Part shown: in pieces, positions 1,758-31,799 of the stretch | Position numbering within the stretch: position 1 is the first letter of the stretch | How the letters are laid out: each line of letters starts with the position of its first letter | The notes under the pieces: generated by a model | The model's database searches: none | What the model was told of the DNA's origin: nothing | The model's input: the letters and a program-made list of their open reading frames with translations, nothing else | Program-made: the position numbers and the translations under genes | Sequence record: NC_061440.1 | Direction: 5' to 3' (one strand) | Length of the DNA stretch: 64,000 nucleotides

Positions 1758-2553
1758 GTTCGAAGGTCCGTACGGACTCACTGAGACAGAGCACATGGTC
1801 CCACGCTGGACGTACCCTGTTAAGCATGGACAGGTTCGTCGTGTTGAAGCGTGGGAACTCGATACGATGCCGAATGCCACGCAGCAAGTGCGCATGGTAA
1901 ACGATATTCATGCAATCCACAGTACACCTGTAGAGGACTACGATGACGAACTCGACCTCGATGAAGAAGCCGCAACGATCTCAAAAACTGAGTCCAGACT
2001 TCTTATCAAGCCTCGACTCAATGAAATCCGCTCCCGTCACAACAAAGACCACATTAGTCCAGAGAACGTCTTCACCGTCAGCGACGAAGTAATTGATGGT
2101 GCGCTGGACAGCATTGACAGCTACTCGGAAACATTCCGCGAGTACCTGATGCACCATGTGTTCAGCCCGATACTTGGGTTTGACATTGCGGCAGGTGAAG
2201 TGGAAGCAATCGCCAAAGACTGTCTCAAAACAGATCTTGAGATAGACAGCGAGCTTGTGCCGTATATCGAGCGCGTAGGGCTTGCTAACGTTCTTGGCGC
2301 TATGCTTACGAAGTCCCAGTCAGTGCCCGAACAAGTACGCGCAGACGTTCTGAAAGACTGGTTAATTAAAGCGTTTGATGACGTTCGCGCAGAGCACAAA
2401 GCGAAGAACACCACCAATGGTCTTCGTGCGCAAATTCGTCGTCTAATGCACGGTAACACCGACCTTGTTGCTAAAGGCACTGGCACGGGTATCGGTACGA
2501 CAAGAGGATTTTCTGAGTACAGGAAACAGATGAACGAGAATGGCCAAGCCTAA
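1750..2553 (+). CDS. hypothetical protein (position suits a terminase small subunit)
   Basis: GTG start overlapping the upstream stop; overlaps the terL start; function inferred from position only. Confidence 0.55.
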   Translation: MSKFEGPYGLTETEHMVPRWTYPVKHGQVRRVEAWELDTMPNATQQVRMVNDIHAIHSTPVEDYDDELDLDEEAATISKTESRLLIKPRLNEIRSRHNKDHISPENVFTVSDEVIDGALDSIDSYSETFREYLMHHVFSPILGFDIAAGEVEAIAKDCLKTDLEIDSELVPYIERVGLANVLGAMLTKSQSVPEQVRADVLKDWLIKAFDDVRAEHKAKNTTNGLRAQIRRLMHGNTDLVAKGTGTGIGTTRGFSEYRKQMNENGQA

Positions 2554-5368
2554 GAAGGGTCCAGCTTTCTCCCTACGTCCAAAACGCATTGCGGCCTTTG
2601 ATGCGCTGCTTGGTGATGACGTACAGGTAGAGGCTTCCGCTGACATGGACTTCTTGTCAGATAATAGTTCAAGTGCGATTAACTTCTTGGAGAAGGGTGA
2701 GGTTAATATCGTTGACTTGGTTGAGGGCGCACTGGAACAACGCACCCTCGTACCACGCGATTTGAAGTTCGACGACAGTTCAATGCCTAAGGCGAAACAC
2801 TTCCTTGAGTGGTGCACTAGTCCCGACTTCCTTAAAGCCGAACCGTATCTTGAACAGGCCTTGATTGGTCTTCGCTTATTCGGAGAGATTTGCGTTCGCT
2901 GCTCTCCTAATCTGCAATGGATGTACACTGAAAACCACGAGCCACAAGAAACAACTGCCGCAATCGAGGAACACTTGCACCTGCTACATAATGGTGTGTG
3001 CCCTCATTGCGGCGCTCGTCGTTCTGAGATGATTCGCAAGAAAGAGATGAACTTCTACAACGAACTGGCTGTGAACGCCGGACAGCGTTGTGTGATTGCT
3101 TCAACTCCTGTTGTGACTTCTCGTGGTATCATGCCGATTGGTCATATGATGGTCGGCCACGACACTCCTGGTTTCCATAAGCCTCGTCGCAACTTCAATG
3201 CGCATAACGGGCGAGAGATCAAGAACGTCAGTCAGGTGTATGTCTCCGATGAAAGCCCAACGAAAGTCGTGACGCTTGCAAACGGCATGTGGATTGAAGC
3301 AACTCATGAGCACCCTGTGCGTACTGAGCAAGGCTTCAAGAAAGTGTCTAAGCTGAAAGTAGGCGACCGTATCGAGATCAAACTCGGTACGAACTCGTGG
3401 GGTAAGATTCAACGTCCTGTATCTATCTATGATGCTGGACTCTCCGTGCGCGAAGAAGCTCTGCGGTATATCGCTGATCGCTCGCTCGCAATCGGAGACA
3501 AGATGCAGTATGTGTCCGATGATGTTGACGCGCTACAGATGGTGTGGTCGATTCTTATCAATGCTGGCCATATGCCTCAAGTGTTACATGACACGCGAAG
3601 CTGGAGCATTGTTTATGATCTCAATGAGCCGCCTGAGTGCCGCTCTCTCCATGTCGAAGTGCAGTCAGTAGATGAAGGCACACCTCAGGTAACGTATGAC
3701 CTACAGATGGAGGGCTTGCCTCAATTCGTAGCGTCAGGCCTGCTGCATCACAATAGCGGTAAGTCGGTCGTGGTAGCGATGATCTCTACCTATCTGACAC
3801 ACAGACTGCTTATGTCGCAATCGCCTACTGGTATCTTGAGCATCGACAGCACAACCGTATTGCACGGAACGTTCGTCGCGCTGACCCAGAAGCAAGCGGC
3901 AGATACACTCTGGACACCGTACTTCAACTATATCATGGGTAGTCCTTGGTTCCAAGCCTATCACGATCTGATTCGCAAACACGAACGCCGTTACGGCATC
4001 GAGGTGATGAAGATTCGTGATACGTTCGTTCTGTACGGACACAGGAACTTCGTTATCTACCCAGCAGGTCCAGATGGTCGTATTCTTCGTGGTCGAACTC
4101 GTGTACTGGCGGTGATCGATGAGGTGGCGTATTTCGACAACGACGCCCAATCCAAAAAGATCAAAGTCAGTGCTGGTGCTGTATACGGAGCACTCGACCG
4201 TTCACTTGCAACCGTGCGAGCGAAAGAGAAACGACAAGTCGAGGCAGGCTACGACGAGGCATTCACGGGCTACTTCTGCAACATCAGTAGTCCGGTACAC
4301 GCTCGTGATAAAATCAATGAGCTGTTGCGTATGTCAGTAGGCTCGGAGAAGCTGTTAGGCATTCATGCTCCTACGTGGAAGATGAACCCTGACATGCCAC
4401 GTAACTCCGAGTTCCTTGTCGAGGCATTCCGTCGTGACCCTGTTGGTGCAGCGCGAGATTATGGCGCAGAAGCACCGTTGTCTGCTAACCCGTTCATCAC
4501 GCAGCCTACGTTTATCGCAGATGCTATCCGTGAGAAAGGTCGTTCGATGTGTACCTACACGCATCATATCATTCGACACAAAGACGGTGAACGCCAGCGC
4601 TACGGTAGTCTGGTAAAAGCGGCAACGACAACCAAAGCGTCCATCCTTGCGATAGATGCTGGCTTCTCGAATAACAGCTTCGCACTCGTAACAGGCTCGC
4701 GTGGTGATGATGGTATTATCAGTGTTGACTGTCTGGTGGAGATCGTTCCAAAGCCGGGCATACCTCTGAACTATACTCTCATCTTTGACGAACTGCTTAT
4801 ACCTCTGTGTAAAGCGCGTAACGTGCGCGTCATGCTTGCTGACCAGTGGCAGTCTCTCAAACTGCTGCAAGACGCCAAGCTGAAAGTTGATTCGATTGAG
4901 GAGTCCGATCAGTACAGCCTGAAATATCAGGACATGTGGACTGTGAAGACGATGTTTGAATCCACTCCATCGAAAATCAGCTTACCGCGCATGACTCACG
5001 CCAACACGATTATGGACACGCTGAAATACGATGGCGATGAATATCCTCAGTGCTTCGAGAACAAACCAACAGAGCACTTGATCATGCAGCTCCAGACAGT
5101 GCAGGACACTGGGCGTAGCGTAATCAAGAACACAGGTGCAACCGATGACTTGTGGCGAGCGATGGCACTCATGGTCTATGGCTTCGAGTGTGGTAACTAC
5201 GACGAGTATCTGACGAAAGCGCCAGAAGTAGCAATCAACCGTGACCCGAATCGCTTGGGTCGTGTGGCGCATAGGCTTAACTCTGGCTCTGCTTCTATTG
5301 GCCGTCCACAGCTTAGTGGTGGTCGTGTTCTTGGCTCTGCGCGTACTCGGATGATCGGCCGTAAGTAA
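2540..5368 (+). CDS. terminase large subunit, intein-interrupted
   Basis: Walker A GQR/SGKS split by the intein, Walker B VIDEVAYF, RuvC-like AIDAGFSNN nuclease motif, N-terminal CxxC...CxxC. Confidence 0.9.
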   Translation: MAKPKKGPAFSLRPKRIAAFDALLGDDVQVEASADMDFLSDNSSSAINFLEKGEVNIVDLVEGALEQRTLVPRDLKFDDSSMPKAKHFLEWCTSPDFLKAEPYLEQALIGLRLFGEICVRCSPNLQWMYTENHEPQETTAAIEEHLHLLHNGVCPHCGARRSEMIRKKEMNFYNELAVNAGQRCVIASTPVVTSRGIMPIGHMMVGHDTPGFHKPRRNFNAHNGREIKNVSQVYVSDESPTKVVTLANGMWIEATHEHPVRTEQGFKKVSKLKVGDRIEIKLGTNSWGKIQRPVSIYDAGLSVREEALRYIADRSLAIGDKMQYVSDDVDALQMVWSILINAGHMPQVLHDTRSWSIVYDLNEPPECRSLHVEVQSVDEGTPQVTYDLQMEGLPQFVASGLLHHNSGKSVVVAMISTYLTHRLLMSQSPTGILSIDSTTVLHGTFVALTQKQAADTLWTPYFNYIMGSPWFQAYHDLIRKHERRYGIEVMKIRDTFVLYGHRNFVIYPAGPDGRILRGRTRVLAVIDEVAYFDNDAQSKKIKVSAGAVYGALDRSLATVRAKEKRQVEAGYDEAFTGYFCNISSPVHARDKINELLRMSVGSEKLLGIHAPTWKMNPDMPRNSEFLVEAFRRDPVGAARDYGAEAPLSANPFITQPTFIADAIREKGRSMCTYTHHIIRHKDGERQRYGSLVKAATTTKASILAIDAGFSNNSFALVTGSRGDDGIISVDCLVEIVPKPGIPLNYTLIFDELLIPLCKARNVRVMLADQWQSLKLLQDAKLKVDSIEESDQYSLKYQDMWTVKTMFESTPSKISLPRMTHANTIMDTLKYDGDEYPQCFENKPTEHLIMQLQTVQDTGRSVIKNTGATDDLWRAMALMVYGFECGNYDEYLTKAPEVAINRDPNRLGRVAHRLNSGSASIGRPQLSGGRVLGSARTRMIGRK
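3089..3754 (+). mobile_element. intein (222 aa) with only a remnant homing endonuclease, in the terminase Walker A
   Basis: Starts CVIASTPV, block B ATHEHP, ends LLHHN followed by Ser(+1); removal restores GQRSGKS. Confidence 0.92.
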
Positions 5369-12266: not shown

Positions 12267-13037
12267 ATGAGCAACGTTGATAAAACAATGCCACAAGGTC
12301 GCTGGGAATTTAATGAGCCAGTTGCTGCTGTCTTCGATAACATGTTGCAAAACTCCATTCCTTCGTATGACCGTATGCGCGACCTGACCTATCGTCTTGG
12401 TCGCCAGTTCGTAACTCCAGGTACGGCCATCGTTGATTTGGGCGCATCGCTCGGTCGCGCTATCGAACCATTCTGTGCTGAGTTCGGCGAGTACCATTAT
12501 ATTCATGCTGCTGACCGTCCCGAGCCAGATCGTGAAATCGGCAATCATTACTGCTGTTATGAAGTCGCACCGGCAATGCTTGAGCGTCTTCGTCAAAACG
12601 AAGTGCTGGTCAAGGCCAAAGCGAAAATCAGTAGTGAGTCGCTGGTTGAAGTCGATACTTTCCGCTTCGACGAGCAGGTTGAGTGCTCCCTGATTCTGAG
12701 TGTGCTGACTCTCCAGTTCACTCCTATCGAACATCGCCAACACATTCTGGAGAAAGTGTACGACTCTCTGGAGAAAGGCGGTGCTTTCATTCTGGTTGAG
12801 AAAGTGTTGGGTGACGACAACTTCCTTGACCGTTTGCTGGTAGACACCTACTACGGCATGAAGGGCGACAACGGTTATTCGCAAGAATCTATTGCGACTA
12901 AGCGCAAAGCTCTCGAAGGCGTACTGGTGCCTGTGAAAGCTGCATGGAACGAAGAACTGCTGCGTAAAGCAGGCTTCAACCGTGTGGAGTGTTTCTACCG
13001 CGACCTGAACTTTGCTGGATGGATCGCAGTCAAATAA
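12267..13037 (+). CDS. cmoA: CmoA-like carboxy-S-adenosylmethionine synthase
   Basis: Colinear with E. coli CmoA as recalled: W.F.E.VA.VF..M...S.P.Y, DLGASLG, TLQF, GG..IL.EK, NGYS, and KR..LE with the catalytic Arg equivalent retained. Confidence 0.88.
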   Translation: MSNVDKTMPQGRWEFNEPVAAVFDNMLQNSIPSYDRMRDLTYRLGRQFVTPGTAIVDLGASLGRAIEPFCAEFGEYHYIHAADRPEPDREIGNHYCCYEVAPAMLERLRQNEVLVKAKAKISSESLVEVDTFRFDEQVECSLILSVLTLQFTPIEHRQHILEKVYDSLEKGGAFILVEKVLGDDNFLDRLLVDTYYGMKGDNGYSQESIATKRKALEGVLVPVKAAWNEELLRKAGFNRVECFYRDLNFAGWIAVK

Positions 13038-13048
13038 GGTAAAACGAA

Positions 13049-14104
13049 ATGAGCGTAAGTGGTGATATTTATAACATCCCTCAACCGTTCGCCATGTATT
13101 GTGGCAACTGTGAAACTCGTGCTCAGGCAAAAGTTGCCTCAGGCACAATTGAATGGGCGTCAGAGAAAGTCTGCTGCGTTGTCGCCGACGATAACGGCCT
13201 GTTCCCTGATGTGCCTCACATCAACATTGCAAGCGTCCATGCTACAGATGCGCGTACTCTGGTAATCGGCTGTGCACCGTTCGGCGGTAAGATTGACGAG
13301 CACATGGACCGCACTATTCGCAGTGCTATCTATCGTGGTCTGAACGTTGCTGCTGCAATGCACAATCGTCTGGCAGACAATCCTGAATACGTTGCGCTGG
13401 CTGAACAGTACAATGTCAAGCTGTACGACTTCCGTCACCGTCCTGACGCGTACCCACTCGGTACTGGTGAGAAGCGCAAAGGCATTCGTCTGCTGACTGT
13501 CGGCACAGATAGTTCCTGCGGTAAAAAGTTCACGACGCTGACGCTACACCGTGTTCTGAAAAAGATTCACGACGACACGGTGTTCTGCTCAACTGGCCAG
13601 ACTGGTTTCCTGATCAGCAATTGCGGCATCAACAACGATACGCTGGTAGCTGACTTCCTTGCTGGTGCCGCTGAGTCCTTATCGCCTGACGGCCCTGCTG
13701 ATCGTATCTATCTGATCGAAGGCCAGGGCGCAATCACTCACCCAGCGTACACTGGCGGCAGCATGAGTCTGATTGCTGGCTCGCAGCCTGACTACTTCAT
13801 CATGTGTCATGCGTGGGGACGTAAGAATCAGCTCGGTGTTAAACGCGCACCTGACCTTGCTTTCGAACTGAAGGCTAATCTGGATGCAGCAGCCATTCAC
13901 GGTCTTACTCCTAAGTATCTGGGCATCAGTATCAACTTCTCCGAGAGCGGCCTGACCATCGAAGAACAAGACGCTGAGATGTGCGCTCTGGAAGACCTGT
14001 ACGACATTCCAGTGTTCGACCCGTCGCGTGATAGTATCGTCATCAAAGAGATGGCCCATCATCTCAAGACGACTGTAATATTCAGGAGCGAGTCGAATGG
14101 CTAA
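13049..14104 (+). CDS. DUF1611 family P-loop protein (DgcN-like)
   Basis: GLNVAAAMH, LLTVGTDSSCGKKFT, STGQTG, DFLAGAAE, IEGQGAITHPAY, GSQPD motifs typical of DUF1611. Confidence 0.85.
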   Translation: MSVSGDIYNIPQPFAMYCGNCETRAQAKVASGTIEWASEKVCCVVADDNGLFPDVPHINIASVHATDARTLVIGCAPFGGKIDEHMDRTIRSAIYRGLNVAAAMHNRLADNPEYVALAEQYNVKLYDFRHRPDAYPLGTGEKRKGIRLLTVGTDSSCGKKFTTLTLHRVLKKIHDDTVFCSTGQTGFLISNCGINNDTLVADFLAGAAESLSPDGPADRIYLIEGQGAITHPAYTGGSMSLIAGSQPDYFIMCHAWGRKNQLGVKRAPDLAFELKANLDAAAIHGLTPKYLGISINFSESGLTIEEQDAEMCALEDLYDIPVFDPSRDSIVIKEMAHHLKTTVIFRSESNG

Positions 14105-18020: not shown

Positions 18021-18863
18021 ATGACAGTAATCAGCCCAATCCGATATCAGGGCAATAAGCGAAGCCTTATCCCGATTATTCTTGAGCACACGCCTTCTGT
18101 GCAGGACTGCCCTCGCATGGTGGACGTGTTTGGTGGTAGCGCTACTGTTTGTGCGAACATGCCGCAGAAGTTTCGCGTTTATAACGAACTGAGTCCTCAG
18201 GTGTACGATATCGTTAAGATGTTAGTCGAACAGGACCCGAAGAAAACTCTTGGTCAGGTCAAGCGACTGGTCAAACATTGGTGCCTGACTAACAGCAACG
18301 AAGCGAACTACGATGCGTTTCGTACCGTCGTCCAGAAGAAGCGCACTGCTATCTTGCATTATGTTGCACATCGCCACGCTCATTCGAACATGCTGCGATT
18401 CAACCAGCAAGGTGTGTACAATGTAGGCTTTGGTGATCGTGGTCTGATTGGTAAGTTCGATGAACTGGAACACGAACTCACTACATTCCACAAACATATG
18501 CAGGGCGTTCACCTGACGAACATGAAGTACGGCAAGCTGCTTGGTCGCTTAGGCCACCAGCTAGACTGCAACACGTTCTGCTACTTCGACCCTCCGTACC
18601 TGGCGAGTGGTGCGATGCAGTACGGTAAGTGGACAGAGCAGAATGAACGCAACCTGCTTACGACTCTGGAGCAGTTGAATCGTCGCGGTGTTCCCTGGAT
18701 GTTGAGCAACGTTATCGAGCACAGAGAGTTCTCAAACGATCTGCTAAAGCGTTGGTTAAAGAAACATGCGACAACCGTGCTCTATCCAAACAAAAGCTAT
18801 GCGATGAACAATGGCCAGAGCGGCTCGCATAGCACGATTGAAATTCTGGCAATGAACTATTGA
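18021..18863 (+). CDS. Dam-like (D12 class) DNA adenine methyltransferase
   Basis: RYQGNK, DVFGGS (motif I), YFDPPY (motif IV), N-terminal layout of Dam/T4Dam. Confidence 0.9.
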   Translation: MTVISPIRYQGNKRSLIPIILEHTPSVQDCPRMVDVFGGSATVCANMPQKFRVYNELSPQVYDIVKMLVEQDPKKTLGQVKRLVKHWCLTNSNEANYDAFRTVVQKKRTAILHYVAHRHAHSNMLRFNQQGVYNVGFGDRGLIGKFDELEHELTTFHKHMQGVHLTNMKYGKLLGRLGHQLDCNTFCYFDPPYLASGAMQYGKWTEQNERNLLTTLEQLNRRGVPWMLSNVIEHREFSNDLLKRWLKKHATTVLYPNKSYAMNNGQSGSHSTIEILAMNY

Positions 18864-20343: not shown

Positions 20344-20731
20344 CGCCAGTGATGCAGAAGCGCGGGCGTACTATCAGAAACAACATGAACGCGCCGAAGC
20401 CACCATGCGAGAAATCTGGGCGTTACGTGGCTGGACGATTCGTTGGGAGTGGCACAACGGCATCTGCGATGATTGTGAGTTCCTGTTCGACGAAACAGGC
20501 AAGCAGTTGTGTCCGTACCACGATGCCATTCCGCAAGAAAGTCAGGTGGCGTACAATCTTGAGAAGCATCGCCTCAATGTGACGTACACCAAGAAATCTG
20601 TAAAATTGATTAACAAGCAAGACCCAAATCCAGTTGAAGGTAAAGCTGACACGTTACGCCAGGCTTATATCAATTGGCTGTTGGCCCTTGAGAAACAAAA
20701 AGCTGAGGAACAAAAGTGCGCCACGACTTAA
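20321..20731 (+). CDS. hypothetical protein with Cys cluster
   Basis: CDDC...CPYH. Confidence 0.6.
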   Translation: MYLPLGDNASDAEARAYYQKQHERAEATMREIWALRGWTIRWEWHNGICDDCEFLFDETGKQLCPYHDAIPQESQVAYNLEKHRLNVTYTKKSVKLINKQDPNPVEGKADTLRQAYINWLLALEKQKAEEQKCATT

Positions 20732-21237
20732 CCGAACTCCCTATTTCCGTAGAGCAAGCAGAGCACATCATGGCCAGTGTGTTTACTCTGGCTGGTGCTT
20801 CTAAATCGAAGCGTCGTGCGACTGCTGCAATGCTCATTCACTTCCACGACGGCTTCCCTACGATTATCAGTAGCGGTGTCAACGGTACTATGCCTGGCGA
20901 AAGCAACGTCATGGAAACTCCTGACTTGACGCTCTCACTTAACACTGTTATCCATGCAGAGGTGAACTGCCTCAATCGCATGGAAGAATACAGTCTGTGG
21001 GCAAACGAACAGGACATTCTGTTCTGTACCGATTCGCCGTGTCCGAACTGTCTGGCTGATCTCGAAGCCGAAGGCGTGAAGACCGTTGTGTATGCGCGTG
21101 AGTATCGACTAACTGATCATCTGGACGCATCTTCGATTAAGATGTTCTGTCTGGATATGAAGTCCGTTGAGCACCGTATGCTTCGCGGTATCGAGCGCAT
21201 GAACGAAGTTATCGCAACAACACCAGCGTCTGAATAA
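20716..21237 (+). CDS. dCMP deaminase family protein
   Basis: SGVNG, HAEVNCL and SPCPNC zinc motifs. Confidence 0.88.
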   Translation: MRHDLTELPISVEQAEHIMASVFTLAGASKSKRRATAAMLIHFHDGFPTIISSGVNGTMPGESNVMETPDLTLSLNTVIHAEVNCLNRMEEYSLWANEQDILFCTDSPCPNCLADLEAEGVKTVVYAREYRLTDHLDASSIKMFCLDMKSVEHRMLRGIERMNEVIATTPASE

Positions 21238-28969: not shown

Positions 28970-29668
28970 ATGGCAAAAATTGCTAAAACAAAGGAAGGGA
29001 AAAAGAAAAGCGCGATGAAGTTTGACTTGAAAACGCTCAAGACTTCACAACTGAAAGGCGCTGATTACAACCCTCGTTTCATTACAGACAGCCGCCTGAA
29101 AGCACTCGAAAGTTCTTTGGGTAGCTTTGGCGATCTGTCTGGCATCGTCTTCAACAACAGTGTCAAAAGCGGCGTATTGATCTCTGGCCACCAGCGTCTG
29201 AAATCCATCGACGGCTGGAAGACTCGCATTGAGATTCAGAAAGCCTCCGACCAACACGGTACCGTAGCTCTGGGTTACATCCACGCTACGCACCCGAAGA
29301 AAGCCGAGAAGGTTATCAGTATCCCGTTGCGTATCGTTAACTGGACTGATAAGAAAGCCGAGTACGCTGCGAACATCGCGGCGAACGCGCACGGCGGTGA
29401 GTTCGATAACAAGAAACTCGCCAAGCTGGTGGAGAAGCTGGACTTGACCACCATCAAGCCTCAGTTGCTGGGTCTTGACCCACTTGAGATTCGCGGCCTT
29501 CAACAAAAGCTGAAAGGCCAGGCTGCGGTTGTAGCTCAAGAGCGTGTCGGTAAAACTACAGGCCAGATGAACGGCAGTAGCGGTGCGTTCAAAGAGTATG
29601 GTACGGACGAAGTAGGTGAGAGTCTGAACTGCACCTGCCCGCGCTGTGGATTTAAGTTCGAGGGATAA
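28970..29668 (+). CDS. ParB/Srx-like N-terminal domain protein with C-terminal Zn ribbon
   Basis: LKGADYNPR, SL..FG, ISGHQRL, AANIAAN..GGEFD, CPRCGF. Confidence 0.82.
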   Translation: MAKIAKTKEGKKKSAMKFDLKTLKTSQLKGADYNPRFITDSRLKALESSLGSFGDLSGIVFNNSVKSGVLISGHQRLKSIDGWKTRIEIQKASDQHGTVALGYIHATHPKKAEKVISIPLRIVNWTDKKAEYAANIAANAHGGEFDNKKLAKLVEKLDLTTIKPQLLGLDPLEIRGLQQKLKGQAAVVAQERVGKTTGQMNGSSGAFKEYGTDEVGESLNCTCPRCGFKFEG

Positions 29669-29669
29669 T

Positions 29670-31799
29670 ATGATCATCAAGCCGCCTACTATGAAGGAAA
29701 TCAACAAGCTGGATAAACCCTGGCGTGGTATGAGTTTCTTCGCAGGTTGCGGTGGATCTTCTACCGGTCACAAGATGGCCGGTATCAACATCCTGTTGAG
29801 TAACGAGTTCGTGGATAGTGCCCGCGAGTCTTACGAAGCAAACCATCCGACTACTAAAGTGCTGCCGCATGATATTCGTCGTCTGGACCCGAGCAAGCTC
29901 ATGCGTTATTGTGGCTTGGCGAAAGGCGAACTGGATTTACTTGACGGCAGTCCTCCGTGCTTTACCGAAGACACCATCATTCATACAGCAGACGGCATGA
30001 AGTTCATCTCGGACATGAATGTCGGCGATCAAGCAATGACCTCTGTTGGTCGTTACTTCCCTGTGTACGATACTATGGTTCGTCCGTATGTCGGCACGAT
30101 GCACAAAATCGAAACTCTGCTGGGCGCAAACAACGCTACACCAGAGCATCCGTTCTTTGTCAGACGCAGCATTCCTACTGGCGGCTACACTGACCCGTTC
30201 TGGTGTGATGCGAAAGACGTTCAGGAAGGTGACCTGTTAGGTAGCCCGCGCACTACGCCTGACATGGGACTCGACGTGTATCAGTCTCAACTCGATCAGC
30301 TGCCGAAGCAGATTGCAGAGTGGAGCACATTCCCTGAGTTCTGGTGGATGGTTGGACACTGGTGTGATCGCGGTTCGATTGAAACAGTGAGCGGTGTTGA
30401 AGTCGTTAGCTTTGAGTCGCACTCAAGCCTCGAAAACGCAATGATTGAGCAGGCGTTTGACGCGCTGAAAATCAGCAGCCTGAACCGTATCGACACGATG
30501 ACAGCACAACGCAAAACGTTCCGTATCGTTATGGACGCAGAGCTGGTGCAGTTCTTACGCCGATTCGTCAGTCAGGGCAACAACAAGTTCTCTCGTCGTC
30601 TGCCTGCGATTGTCTTCCACCTGACAGTCGAATTGAAGCAACAGTTCATTCTCGGTTGTGCCGGTCATGACTATGTGACTGGTATGGGAACAGGCTTGGC
30701 GATCACCTCAGATAGCCGTCGCTTCCTGATTGAGCTGAACTACCTGTGCTGTTCTGCATTCAACCGACCGCTGTTCGATGGTCTGACTTGGGGCGACGTT
30801 TACTTCGGCAGCCCGATGACTCCGCGTGATCGTAACAGTGTTAAGCCTCTCATTGGCTTCCTGTTCCTGCAGGACGAACACAACTTCTTCCACGAGTTCG
30901 ATGACGCTGACCCGCATTTGTGGGTAGAAGTGATTGAGAACCTCGCGTATCAGGCGACATGTGACGTGTACAACTTCTCCGTTGAGACGGATGAAACATA
31001 CGTTGCAAACAGCATGGTCGTTCACAACTGCAAGGGCTTCTCTACTGCAGGTGTGAAAGAAGAAGGCTGGGGCAAGGAAGTTAAATACAGCGATAACAAG
31101 TATCAGCAGGTTGATGACCTGTTCGATCAGTATTGTCGTATGCTGGAAGGCATGAAGCCGAAGGTGTTCACTGCGGAAAACGTGAGTGGCCTTGTGAAGG
31201 GCGCATCGAAAGGTTACTTCCTTGAAATCATGAAGGAGTTCGACCGAATAGGTTATTACGTTCGAGCACCTATGCTTAATGCTGCGTGGCTTGGTGTGCC
31301 TCAATCGCGTGAGCGTATCATCTTTATGGGTGTACGCAAAGACGTTGCACACGCACTGGGTCACAAGACGGCTGCGGCCGCTGTGCCGAATGTTGTTCCG
31401 TGTGACAGTATGGCATTCCTTGCCGATGCTCTGCCGCATATTCTGCGATACAAGTCCACGAAGAAAGATATCATCACCTATCTTCCTGCGATGAACGGAC
31501 CTATGCCAACGATCACTGCTGCCGACGCCATTGCGTATGAGACCGCGCGATTCTCATCGGCTGGCTTCGTCGAGGACAACAAAGGTCATCGCCGTAAACT
31601 GACCATTGACGAACTCAAAGTGATATCGGGTTTGCCCTCAGACTACAAACTGAAAGGCAAATTCGAAGAACAGTGGGAACGTCTTGGTCGTATCTGTGTG
31701 CCTGCAATGACACACGCAGCGGCTAAAGCGCTCATCGAACACGTCCTGATTCCTTACGCGAAGAAACGTAAGAAGAAGCCAGGCGATATCTTTAAGTAA
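29670..31799 (+). CDS. C5-cytosine DNA methyltransferase homolog, intein-interrupted; predicted carboxymethyltransferase (CmoX-like)
   Basis: Motifs I FAGCGG, IV GSPPC, VI ENV, VIII PQSRER, IX RKLTIDE; motif X reads QWERLGRICVP instead of Q.GN.V. Confidence 0.9.
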   Translation: MIIKPPTMKEINKLDKPWRGMSFFAGCGGSSTGHKMAGINILLSNEFVDSARESYEANHPTTKVLPHDIRRLDPSKLMRYCGLAKGELDLLDGSPPCFTEDTIIHTADGMKFISDMNVGDQAMTSVGRYFPVYDTMVRPYVGTMHKIETLLGANNATPEHPFFVRRSIPTGGYTDPFWCDAKDVQEGDLLGSPRTTPDMGLDVYQSQLDQLPKQIAEWSTFPEFWWMVGHWCDRGSIETVSGVEVVSFESHSSLENAMIEQAFDALKISSLNRIDTMTAQRKTFRIVMDAELVQFLRRFVSQGNNKFSRRLPAIVFHLTVELKQQFILGCAGHDYVTGMGTGLAITSDSRRFLIELNYLCCSAFNRPLFDGLTWGDVYFGSPMTPRDRNSVKPLIGFLFLQDEHNFFHEFDDADPHLWVEVIENLAYQATCDVYNFSVETDETYVANSMVVHNCKGFSTAGVKEEGWGKEVKYSDNKYQQVDDLFDQYCRMLEGMKPKVFTAENVSGLVKGASKGYFLEIMKEFDRIGYYVRAPMLNAAWLGVPQSRERIIFMGVRKDVAHALGHKTAAAAVPNVVPCDSMAFLADALPHILRYKSTKKDIITYLPAMNGPMPTITAADAIAYETARFSSAGFVEDNKGHRRKLTIDELKVISGLPSDYKLKGKFEEQWERLGRICVPAMTHAAAKALIEHVLIPYAKKRKKKPGDIFK
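29958..31028 (+). mobile_element. intein (357 aa) with degenerate LAGLIDADG endonuclease, in the catalytic PC motif
   Basis: SPP/CFTEDT start, block B NATPEHPF, ends VVHN followed by Cys(+1), the catalytic cysteine. Confidence 0.93.

Follow-up and report, generated by a model that had tools for sequence, protein, structure and literature searches.

The closest described counterpart of the locus considered here is the DNA-modification system of the Synechococcus phage S-B43. In this phage, CmoA makes carboxy-S-adenosylmethionine (carboxy-SAM), CmoX carboxymethylates cytosines in DNA at C5, giving 5-carboxymethylcytosine (5cxmC), and CmoY, an asparagine-synthase homolog, ligates glycine to the new carboxyl group without a partner (Yang et al., PMC12783734). 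The same study identifies CmoX by an SPPC motif together with an arginine equivalent to R350 in SpCmoX, reports a ParBc protein as a frequent neighbor, and suggests that other clusters of the ligase probably use unknown amines; the paper and its supplements make no mention of DUF1611, racemases, acetyltransferases, glycosyltransferases, or inteins (PMC12783734). The second point of reference is DgcN. In PMC13759103 and PMC12363236, which cite Yu et al. (2023, ISME J), as in the title of structure 7XRJ and the NCBIfam name, the known activity of the DUF1611 family is given as that of DgcN, an acetyl-coenzyme A (acetyl-CoA):D-glutamate N-acetyltransferase. Our literature search found no earlier link between the DUF1611/DgcN family and DNA modification. 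Here, we discuss a DUF1611 gene in a 64,000-nucleotide stretch of DNA ("the window"), which corresponds to nucleotides 1-64000 of the Erwinia amylovora jumbo phage pEa_SNUABM_22 (Alexandravirus; MZ443785/NC_061440; 100% identity), together with the genes for a CmoA-like protein and a CmoY-like amide ligase between which it lies (Table 1).

Like S-B43, the window encodes a homolog of CmoA, a CmoX in which both the SPPC motif and the arginine corresponding to R350 are present, and a ligase that lacks a glutaminase domain, while the label of its ParB-like neighbor is weak. DUF1611 is missing from S-B43, where the ligase couples glycine unaided. In pEa_SNUABM_22, by contrast, the ligase falls into a separate clade marked by an insertion and a basic motif, an intein interrupts CmoX, which is located 15 kb from CmoA, and relatives of the phage add a racemase and a glycosyltransferase of the GT-B type. 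With DgcN (7XRJ), the phage protein shares its fold, i.e., a two-domain architecture composed of a Rossmann-like DUF1611_N and a P-loop DUF1611_C domain, as well as a core of 47 positions and an acidic, small-molecule-enzyme character. It differs from DgcN in scoring below the equivalog cut-off, in belonging to a phage-only clade, in the residues replaced in one part of that clade (sub-clade A), and in being partnered by a DNA-modification ligase instead of the DgcA enolase. Judged from comparative sequence data, what appears to be new is that a CmoA/X/Y cassette has acquired a phage-specific member of the DgcN family as obligatory partner for particular ligase clades. We regard it as highly probable that DUF1611 is a functional part of the 5cxmC hypermodification pathway and coupled to its ligase, which would give the barely studied DUF1611/DgcN family a second biological role.

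DUF1611 and its ligase as a two-gene module

The genes in this region are nearly all on the plus strand and separated by very short intergenic gaps. The cmoA stop codon (13035-13037) lies 11 nt ahead of the DUF1611 ATG, which is preceded by AAGG at a distance of 9 nt. At the other end of the gene, an AGGAG sequence (14084-14088) is positioned 8 nt before the ligase ATG (14097), and the ligase start overlaps the DUF1611 stop by 8 nt (ATGGCTAA). The original prediction described an intact DUF1611/DgcN-like gene between cmoA and an amide ligase, with adjacent or overlapping starts, and this description agrees with the open reading frame (ORF), its Pfam domains, and both junctions. Overlaps of 4-32 nt between the DUF1611 stop and the beginning of the following gene are seen in 11 of the 14 single-copy cassettes listed. 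Promoter- and terminator-like sites showed no excess over shuffled sequence.

Searches seeded with DUF1611 returned relatives, 66% to 42% identical, on metagenomic phage contigs with unrelated backbones. In each of the 17 cassettes with readable flanks, DUF1611 is located directly 5′ of a ligase gene of the asparagine-synthase family, with at most a racemase gene between the two (the window, AD1, SN1/3/7, L007, L008, L010, L011, L013, L015, L017, L103, and L104 are among them; gene orders in Table 1). The original prediction had named homologs unlinked to cmoA or the ligase in other phages as the finding that would speak against it; the opposite was observed. Searches in the other direction, seeded with the ligase, gave L106, L107, and L115, all with DUF1611 immediately upstream, and L118/L119, where two DUF1611 paralogs in tandem stand ahead of a more distant ligase. 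The metagenome scan by ligase gave three loci, one of which, L108, has an upstream flank too short to inform. Among the isolates, 34 records carry DUF1611 and the same 34 carry a ligase that is at least 80% identical to that of the window (both or neither, 34/34). The window-type ligase was never found without DUF1611, neither in isolates nor at the ligase-seeded loci, and related Erwinia jumbo phages without DUF1611 (SNUABM_2, 39, 35, 36, 30 and 5 group, phB78, Y3, Yoloswag, and SNUABM_52) carry ligases of other clades (<31% identity). A search of 50,697 phage records revealed no DUF1611 carrier outside the Erwinia/Dickeya jumbo-phage group, and scanning IMG/VR viral contigs by DUF1611 returned known jumbo phages only. 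The obligate pairing predicts a DNA base more elaborate than the one known product of the pathway and represents a concrete, widespread sub-type of the ligase clusters with unknown amines (cf. PMC12783734).

Cellular DUF1611 genes have other neighbors. In line with the expectation that DgcN-type genes are normally paired with the enolase-family DgcA, an MR_MLE (DgcA-type) gene follows DUF1611 in four of the five cellular loci scanned (Brenneria, Vibrio, Pelagibacteraceae, and Steroidobacteraceae), and class-IV aminotransferases and amino-acid transporters or a permease are located nearby. The absence of DgcA from the phage locus, also part of the original prediction, was confirmed: tblastn (E ≤ 1) found no DgcA-type enolase in the window, and none of the 17 phage cassettes has an MR_MLE gene. 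The D-amino-acid catabolic neighborhoods of the cellular homologs (DgcA-type enolase, class-IV aminotransferase, and amino-acid permease), and the fact that DUF1611 looks like a small-molecule enzyme, raise the possibility that the phage gene is an unrelated metabolic gene. It would acetylate host D-glutamate or another D-amino acid, for peptidoglycan perturbation or nitrogen scavenging, with the ligase as a neighbor by chance. This scenario is highly improbable given that the adjacency is invariant across unrelated backbones and three ligase clades, mostly with overlapping frames, that all 34 carrier records among the 50,697 also have the cognate ligase, and that DUF1611 swaps together with the ligase.

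This swap is seen in comparison with pEa_SNUABM_2, a relative without DUF1611. Nucleotide homology to the window breaks off after position 13037, where cmoA ends, and is found again from 14977 onward, close to where the next gene begins. The CmoA proteins of the two phages are 97.7% identical, while their ligases share only 24%. Hence, exactly DUF1611 plus the ligase has been exchanged for another ligase. Moreover, ligases associated with sub-clade A DUF1611 are 54-96% identical to one another across contigs whose DUF1611 proteins are only 45-80% identical. Those associated with sub-clade B (L017, L103, and L104) show 58-70% mutual identity and 23-31% identity to the A-associated ligases. The A-associated ligases and the L119 ligase carry an insertion of ~10 residues and an invariant basic motif, GHRPHRGYQTEA; at the place of this motif, SpCmoY, the SNUABM_2-type ligases, and the B-associated ligases have xNHxNLQLGD. 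Collectively, DUF1611 and a dedicated CmoY-type ligase constitute a two-gene module that is inherited, swapped, and diversified as a unit in CmoA/CmoX cassettes. The proposal that the enzyme has been repurposed inside a DNA-modification operon is thereby supported at the level of comparative genomics, through the linkage, the 34/34 co-occurrence, and the exact swap boundaries; what it would do chemically is considered further below.

Two additional genes accompany the module in relatives. A protein of ~420 residues is encoded between CmoA and DUF1611 in 21 of the 34 isolate records, 12 of which also have a protein of ~311 residues between DUF1611 and the ligase; neither is present anywhere in the window phage genome. 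The 311-residue protein belongs to the alanine/serine-racemase family and keeps the pyridoxal phosphate (PLP) lysine, the second catalytic tyrosine, and R209 and R129 of Salmonella Alr. With the catalytic Lys, Tyr, and Arg of Alr retained, the racemase should act on a free α-amino acid. The 420-residue protein has weak GT1/GT4 Pfam matches, and its model (predicted local distance difference test [pLDDT] score 63), from which the fold class alone is taken, matches only GT-B glycosyltransferases, with a phage glycosyltransferase at the top. Scans seeded with the racemase and the GT-B protein returned only the Erwinia/Dickeya jumbo-phage lineage. DUF1611 and the ligase form the core, and the racemase and the glycosyltransferase are optional. 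Four cassette architectures, differing stepwise by module, occur in one Erwinia phage group: another ligase only (pEa_SNUABM_2), DUF1611 and ligase (pEa_SNUABM_22), the same with GT-B (pEa_SNUABM_7), and with the racemase too (pEa_SNUABM_3). These phages constitute a natural series with cassettes one module apart, which makes the question testable by nucleoside mass spectrometry. As these phages serve as fire-blight biocontrol agents, their DNA chemistry bears on resistance to host restriction, on sequencing, and on detection.

The phage protein in relation to DgcN

Both DUF1611 domains of the window protein score above the Pfam cut-offs: PF07755 (DUF1611_C) with E 4e-45 and 154.1 bits versus 25, and PF17396 (DUF1611_N) with E 4e-18 and 65.9 bits versus 22.6. 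The best solved relative is DgcN, 7XRJ (E 5e-51, residues 10-328). An AlphaFold2 model based on 38 homologs (mean pLDDT 93) matches 7XRJ in Foldseek with E 2.5e-31, template-modeling (TM) scores of 0.79/0.83, and 33% identity in the structural alignment. With the DgcN equivalog of NCBIfam, NF041892, the protein scores 279.9 bits, below the cut-off of 480. Filing it as DgcN proper was rejected on this score, on its departure from the near-invariant residue set, and on the missing DgcA pairing. The ratio of nonsynonymous to synonymous substitution rates (dN/dS) is 0.13-0.22 for the DUF1611 gene, which indicates purifying selection, somewhat more relaxed than for the ligase (0.05-0.09) and CmoA (0.06-0.09). 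Few proteins belong to the family: a search of 1.84 billion proteins yielded 1274 representatives at E ≤ 0.001. PHROGs contains no family for the window protein, BFVD gave no true DUF1611 fold match, and the N-terminally extended DUF1611 proteins (P0063, P0121, P0131, and P0183) have no recognizable extra domain.

In a maximum-likelihood tree of 111 sequences, among them 71 cellular, 17 phage-context, and 20 metagenomic ones, the phage-context and metagenomic proteins form a single clade (ultrafast bootstrap 100/SH-like approximate likelihood ratio test 99) with 0 of the 71 cellular sequences inside; a quick tree agrees with this phage-only clade. The reference bacterial and archaeal genomes have no homolog of the window protein above ~44% identity. 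Between the phage-clade and the cellular sequences, 47 positions show the same residue in at least 90% of each group. These include the P-loop GTDxxxGK..T (G152, T153, D154, G158, K159, and T162), T182-GQTG, D197, D202, E209, E224-GQG, H231-P232, C253, R129, R143, R147, and H105. This core, together with the purifying selection, argues that the phage protein is an active enzyme with the cofactor and basic chemistry predicted from the DUF1611/DgcN family.

Beyond the family, Foldseek matches involve the C-terminal domain only and are to BioD (dethiobiotin synthetases), CobB (cobyrinic acid a,c-diamide synthase), CTP synthase (CTPS), and ParA/MinD; those to BioD, CobB, and CTPS have E 2e-4 to 2e-3 and TM 0.3-0.5, and the sequence carries the GTDxxxGK motif. 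These matches place the domain close to the ATP-dependent amidoligases in fold, not among their members. The matches and the BioD-like P-loop nevertheless suggest an alternative in which DUF1611, as a SIMIBI P-loop enzyme similar to BioD, CobB, and CTP synthase, would activate a carboxylate, on either a 5cxmC-bound amino acid or a free precursor, and add a second amine; in this case, the tandem paralogs in L119 could add residues in succession. That DUF1611 is an amidoligase of this kind is very unlikely, since the sole characterized member of the family is an acetyl-CoA-dependent N-acetyltransferase and all 47 core positions common to the DgcN group are kept, with no sign of a cofactor switch.

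The phage proteins differ from cellular DgcN-type enzymes at positions that hardly vary among 71 cellular sequences. In sub-clade A, R180 is replaced by C (17/17) and D221 by Y (16/17), and the further replacements are H219 by A/T/R, W220 by I/V/L, H243 by A, W86 by I/M/L, and T284 by H; the window protein has M, C, R, I, Y, A, H, and G at W86, R180, H219, W220, D221, H243, T284, and N285, respectively. Sub-clade B retains R180, H219, W220, D221, and N285. Of the two L119 paralogs, one is DgcN-like at the contrast positions, while the other has lost R180 and has Y221. The replaced residues are likely to lie beside invariant motifs, at the C-terminal ends of strands β2 and β3, on the face that forms the active site of P-loop folds. 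The replaced residues would then form the acceptor pocket, and the specificity of sub-clade A is predicted to have changed relative to the cellular DgcN-type enzymes.

Possible roles in 5cxmC hypermodification

Starting from the gene anatomy, family membership, conservation, linkage, co-diversification, and block exchange described above, we infer a pathway, its chemical steps, acyl donor, acceptor, and step order included. In the reading that we tentatively favor, as possible rather than probable, DUF1611 N-acylates a free amino-acid building block and the ligase joins the product to 5cxmC. CmoA would supply carboxy-SAM, and CmoX, after splicing of its intein, would carboxymethylate C5 of DNA cytosines to give 5cxmC. 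Off the DNA, DUF1611 would N-acylate the α-amine of a free amino-acid-type building block with two amines, the D-isomer in relatives with the racemase; the donor would be an acyl-CoA and, if DgcN is a guide, acetyl-CoA. The ligase, produced by coupled translation and possibly bound to DUF1611, would then adenylate 5cxmC and couple the remaining amine. The predicted final base is an N-acyl-amino-acid amide of 5cxmC, compared with the glycine amide in S-B43, and in relatives the basic GT-B glycosyltransferase would decorate the adduct further on the DNA.

The original prediction offered three roles for DUF1611, i.e., making the substrate of the ligase, activating it, or acylating the modified base. 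The evidence leans modestly to making the substrate, since the protein, like its cellular relatives, is acidic and has the character of a small-molecule enzyme. The DNA-acting enzymes of these phages are basic: CmoX has an isoelectric point (pI) of ~9.4 (window exteins, net charge +13), the window-type ligase 9.4 (+12), and GT-B 9.1 (+12). The small-molecule enzymes are acidic (CmoA, pI 5.2-5.6; racemase, 6.2), and so is phage DUF1611 (median pI 5.7; window 5.6, net charge -10), which does not differ from its cellular homologs. The acidic DUF1611 next to basic DNA-acting partners favors action on free metabolites, an argument to which we would give modest weight. Substrate preparation is also favored because each enzyme would keep the substrate class of its characterized relatives, with only the ligase, CmoX, and the glycosyltransferase touching DNA, and because it would explain the obligate pairing of DUF1611 with the ligase.

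Several points weigh against N-acylation of a free building block. SpCmoY, which acts on DNA experimentally, is acidic (pI 5.8), which weakens the charge argument, and it works without a partner (PMC12783734). Acylation of the α-amine of a mono-amino acid would destroy the sole nucleophile of the ligase, and the model therefore requires an assumed second amine. The racemase resembles Alr/VanT, and its substrate is therefore most likely Ala or Ser, each with a single amine. Sub-clade B keeps all DgcN-type residues, which suggests a mono-amine acceptor similar to D-Glu and would be in better keeping with the relay discussed next. For the GT-B add-on, the adduct should carry a hydroxyl, which substrate preparation does not provide. 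Moreover, the chemistry of the phage members is proposed by analogy with DgcN, and the three-dimensional position of the sub-clade A replacements is deduced from the conservation contrast.

These points have led us to consider a relay, in which the ligase would only activate the DNA-borne carboxymethyl group, as acyl-adenylate or CoA thioester, and DUF1611 would transfer it to the α-amine of a free (D-)amino acid. The product would be a 5cxmC-(D)-aminoacyl amide, e.g., with D-Ala or D-Ser in sub-clade A and D-Glu in sub-clade B. Such a product is an N-acyl amino acid, the class of compound made by DgcN, and a second amine is unnecessary. The relay would account for the obligate two-way co-occurrence, the co-diversification of the ligase, and the DgcN-type residues kept in sub-clade B. 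An Alr/VanT-like racemase with an intact catalytic dyad would supply the free D-amino acid, and a Ser adduct would offer a hydroxyl to GT-B. The strongly basic motif unique to the window-type ligase, where stand-alone ligases have NHxNLQLGD, is also consistent with it, and pairs of acid:CoA ligase and acyl-CoA:amino-acid N-acyltransferase provide a parallel. In this scenario, however, a PP-loop ligase has to release or hand over an activated, DNA-borne acyl group and DUF1611 has to accept a DNA-tethered donor, both of which are unprecedented. Furthermore, phage DUF1611 has gained no basic, DNA-binding character relative to the cellular homologs, the B-type ligases have the C-terminal motif of the stand-alone ligases, and SpCmoY completes amide formation alone (PMC12783734). 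We consider a relay unlikely.

Alternatively, DUF1611 might act after the ligase. If the ligase attached a diamine or diamino acid to 5cxmC, DUF1611 could cap the adduct on the DNA by N-acetylating its free amine, which is the known acetyl-CoA-dependent chemistry of the family and would agree with a remodeled pocket in sub-clade A. Acetylated amine adducts have a precedent in phage thymidine hypermodification. Capping of this kind is distinctly unlikely, because DUF1611 is acidic (-10) and not shifted from its cellular homologs, while its DNA-acting partners carry +12 to +13. In addition, optional tailoring functions, such as the racemase and GT-B, are usually lost and gained, yet the window-type ligase is never without DUF1611, and DUF1611 is always ahead of the ligase in gene order. 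The thymidine hypermodification pathways of phages M6, ViI, and PaMx11 elaborate a base handle on DNA with amino-acid-derived groups by means of PLP enzymes, acetyltransferases, and glycosyltransferases, whose genes form modular cassettes that differ from one related phage to another; they start from 5-hydroxymethyl-dU and involve kinases, aGPT-Pplases, and GNAT-type acetyltransferases. Here, the handle is a carboxyl on cytosine, and the acyltransferase has the unrelated DUF1611/BioD-like fold.

A further proposal, which we regard as doubtful, is that DUF1611 is the nucleophile-supplying subunit of a two-component amide synthetase, replacing a glutaminase domain, and that together with the ligase (and the Alr-type racemase in relatives) it installs a D-amino-acid side chain on cytosine. 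This side chain would be N-acylated or directly N-linked to the 5-carboxymethyl group. The logic resembles that of asparagine synthetase B and of the glutaminase-fused CmoY cluster (A0A7T0Q3R0 type, PMC12783734), where adenylation of a carboxylate is the task of a PP-loop synthetase and the nitrogen nucleophile comes from another catalytic unit. The DUF1611 gene is located directly 5′ of the synthetase gene and translationally coupled to it. The differences are that the partner is a separate DgcN-family protein instead of a fused Ntn glutaminase, that the nucleophile would be an amino-acid derivative and not ammonia, and that the arrangement here is known from genes. If this is correct, a D-amino acid would have been found in a natural DNA base for the first time, and the DgcN fold would have gained a new catalytic role. 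The readings outlined here make testable predictions of new DNA bases, possibly with a D-amino acid.

The surrounding cassette and further observations

The coordinates of the genes discussed and the gene orders of the metagenomic cassettes are collected in Table 1.

Table 1. Features of the window and of related cassettes. Positions without a prefix refer to the window, others to the contig or phage named.
Feature	Position	Strand	Basis or remark
DUF1611/DgcN-family enzyme, phage sub-clade A, 351 aa, ATG start	13049..14104	+	Pfam, 7XRJ match, fold model, tree, dN/dS
CmoA-like carboxy-SAM synthase (predicted), 256 aa	12267..13037	+	TIGR00740, PHROG 4752, PDB matches
CmoY-like PP-loop (Asn-synthase family) amide ligase, window-type clade, 289 aa	14097..14966	+	PF00733, SpCmoY identity
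Coupling junction: AGGAG ribosome-binding site within DUF1611 3′ end and 8-nt stop/start overlap (ATGGCTAA)	14084..14104	+	Direct sequence reading
CmoX-type DNA cytosine C5-carboxymethyltransferase, intein-interrupted; likely real start ATG 29691	29646..31799	+	PF00145, SpCmoX alignment
Intein, ~357 aa, between SPP and catalytic Cys of CmoX	29958..31028	+	Alignment boundaries CFTEDT...VVHN/C
ParB-like ORF just upstream of CmoX, 232 aa, weak assignment	28970..29668	+	84% identity to AD1 gp047
Conserved basic protein, 204 aa	14968-15582		Directly after ligase
Dam-like N6-adenine methyltransferase	18021-18863		
dCMP deaminase	20716-21237		
Thymidylate-synthase homolog, 402 aa	25793-27001		
942-aa ORF	2540-5368		Weak Intein_splicing match
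GT-B-like gene, pEa_SNUABM_3 (L019)	2034-3296		With the racemase around DUF1611; also L020, L021, L115
Alr-type PLP racemase, pEa_SNUABM_3 (L019)	4324-5259		See preceding row
Cassette methylase with intein at the identical site, L016	4611-6842		
Cassette methylase with intein at the identical site, L017	5123-7423		
Tandem DUF1611 paralogs, L119 (also L118)	2695-4947		Ahead of third ligase clade
158-aa protein, GmrSD_N-like domain, L010	10896-11372		Directly after ligase
DAHP synthase, L011	10943-11806		Beside CmoA-like gene
Type-II chorismate mutase, L103	5622-6089		Beside CmoA-like gene
Cassette L007			DUF1611 → ligase
Cassettes L008, L010, L013			DUF1611 → Ala-racemase-fold gene → ligase
Cassette L011			DUF1611 → Ala-racemase-fold gene → ligase, with CmoA-like gene and DAHP synthase
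Cassettes L015/L016, L017			Intein-split C5-methylase → optional GT-like gene → DUF1611 → ligase → CmoA-like gene
Cassette L103			C5-methylase → chorismate mutase → CmoA-like gene → DUF1611 → ligase
Cassette L104			C5-methylase → DUF1611 → ligase → CmoA-like gene

The CmoA-like ORF matches TIGR00740 with E 1e-42, below the equivalog cut-off, and PHROG 4752 with E 4e-82. It is 30% identical to SpCmoA, its nearest PDB relatives are the CmoA structures 4GEK, 4IWN, and 1IM8, and its predicted activity is of the carboxy-SAM synthase type. The ligase matches PF00733 (E 5e-14) and lacks the glutaminase domain; it is 32% identical to the characterized SpCmoY (E 1e-32), with an intact PP-loop (SSGLDG) and a conserved ELNxPKQK motif. 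The CmoX-type ORF matches PF00145 (E 2e-38) as well as Intein_splicing and Hint_2. Alignment with SpCmoX (N-extein 53% and C-extein 31% identical) reveals both hallmarks of CmoX, i.e., a catalytic Cys that the intein separates from GSPP, and ERLGR, in which the arginine of "GR" is equivalent to R350. An intein-free cassette homolog (L013) matches the SpCmoX structure 8YF3 with E 1.8e-60, compared with 1e-26 for the HaeIII methylase. Taken together, these similarities indicate that the surrounding system is a real CmoA/X/Y system.

The catalytic cysteine of CmoX is the +1 residue of the intein. As the intein splits the SPPC motif ahead of this cysteine, CmoX activity would depend on protein splicing. 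The identical intein site is found in cassette methylases of two unrelated contigs, L016 and L017. AD1 gp047, a "ParB-like partition protein" according to RefSeq, shares 84% identity with the ORF immediately ahead of CmoX, yet this ORF gave no Pfam ParBc match with the threshold relaxed to E 0.5, which may reflect a strongly diverged domain or an unreliable ParB label.

Some of the metagenomic cassettes carry other genes of interest. In L119, the tandem DUF1611 paralogs are 38% identical to each other; no CmoA or CmoX is present in the 10.8 kb fetched, and genes for dCTP-deaminase-like and thymidylate-synthase-like proteins follow. GmrSD-type enzymes cleave modified DNA, and in L010 the ligase is directly followed by the gene for a 158-residue protein with a GmrSD_N-like domain (E 1e-6), a curious place for such a fragment. 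The cassettes with a 3-deoxy-D-arabino-heptulosonate 7-phosphate (DAHP) synthase (L011; E 2e-42) or a type-II chorismate mutase (L103) beside the CmoA-like gene appear to boost the supply of prephenate, the carboxy-SAM co-substrate.

In the window, the ligase is directly followed by the gene for a conserved, basic 204-residue protein (pI 8.9) with no family match. It is present in phages with and without DUF1611 (74% identical in SNUABM_2) and lies just outside the swapped block. The window also encodes a Dam-like N6-adenine methyltransferase, a dCMP deaminase, and a thymidylate-synthase homolog. In the latter, the Pfam match starts at approximately residue 60, and the protein could in principle be a pyrimidine hydroxymethylase rather than ThyA. 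Finally, the 942-residue ORF has a weak Intein_splicing match (E 5e-5, residues 226-405) and may represent a second intein-containing gene; its position corresponds to that of the "terminase large subunit" in the RefSeq annotation of the syntenic phage AD1.

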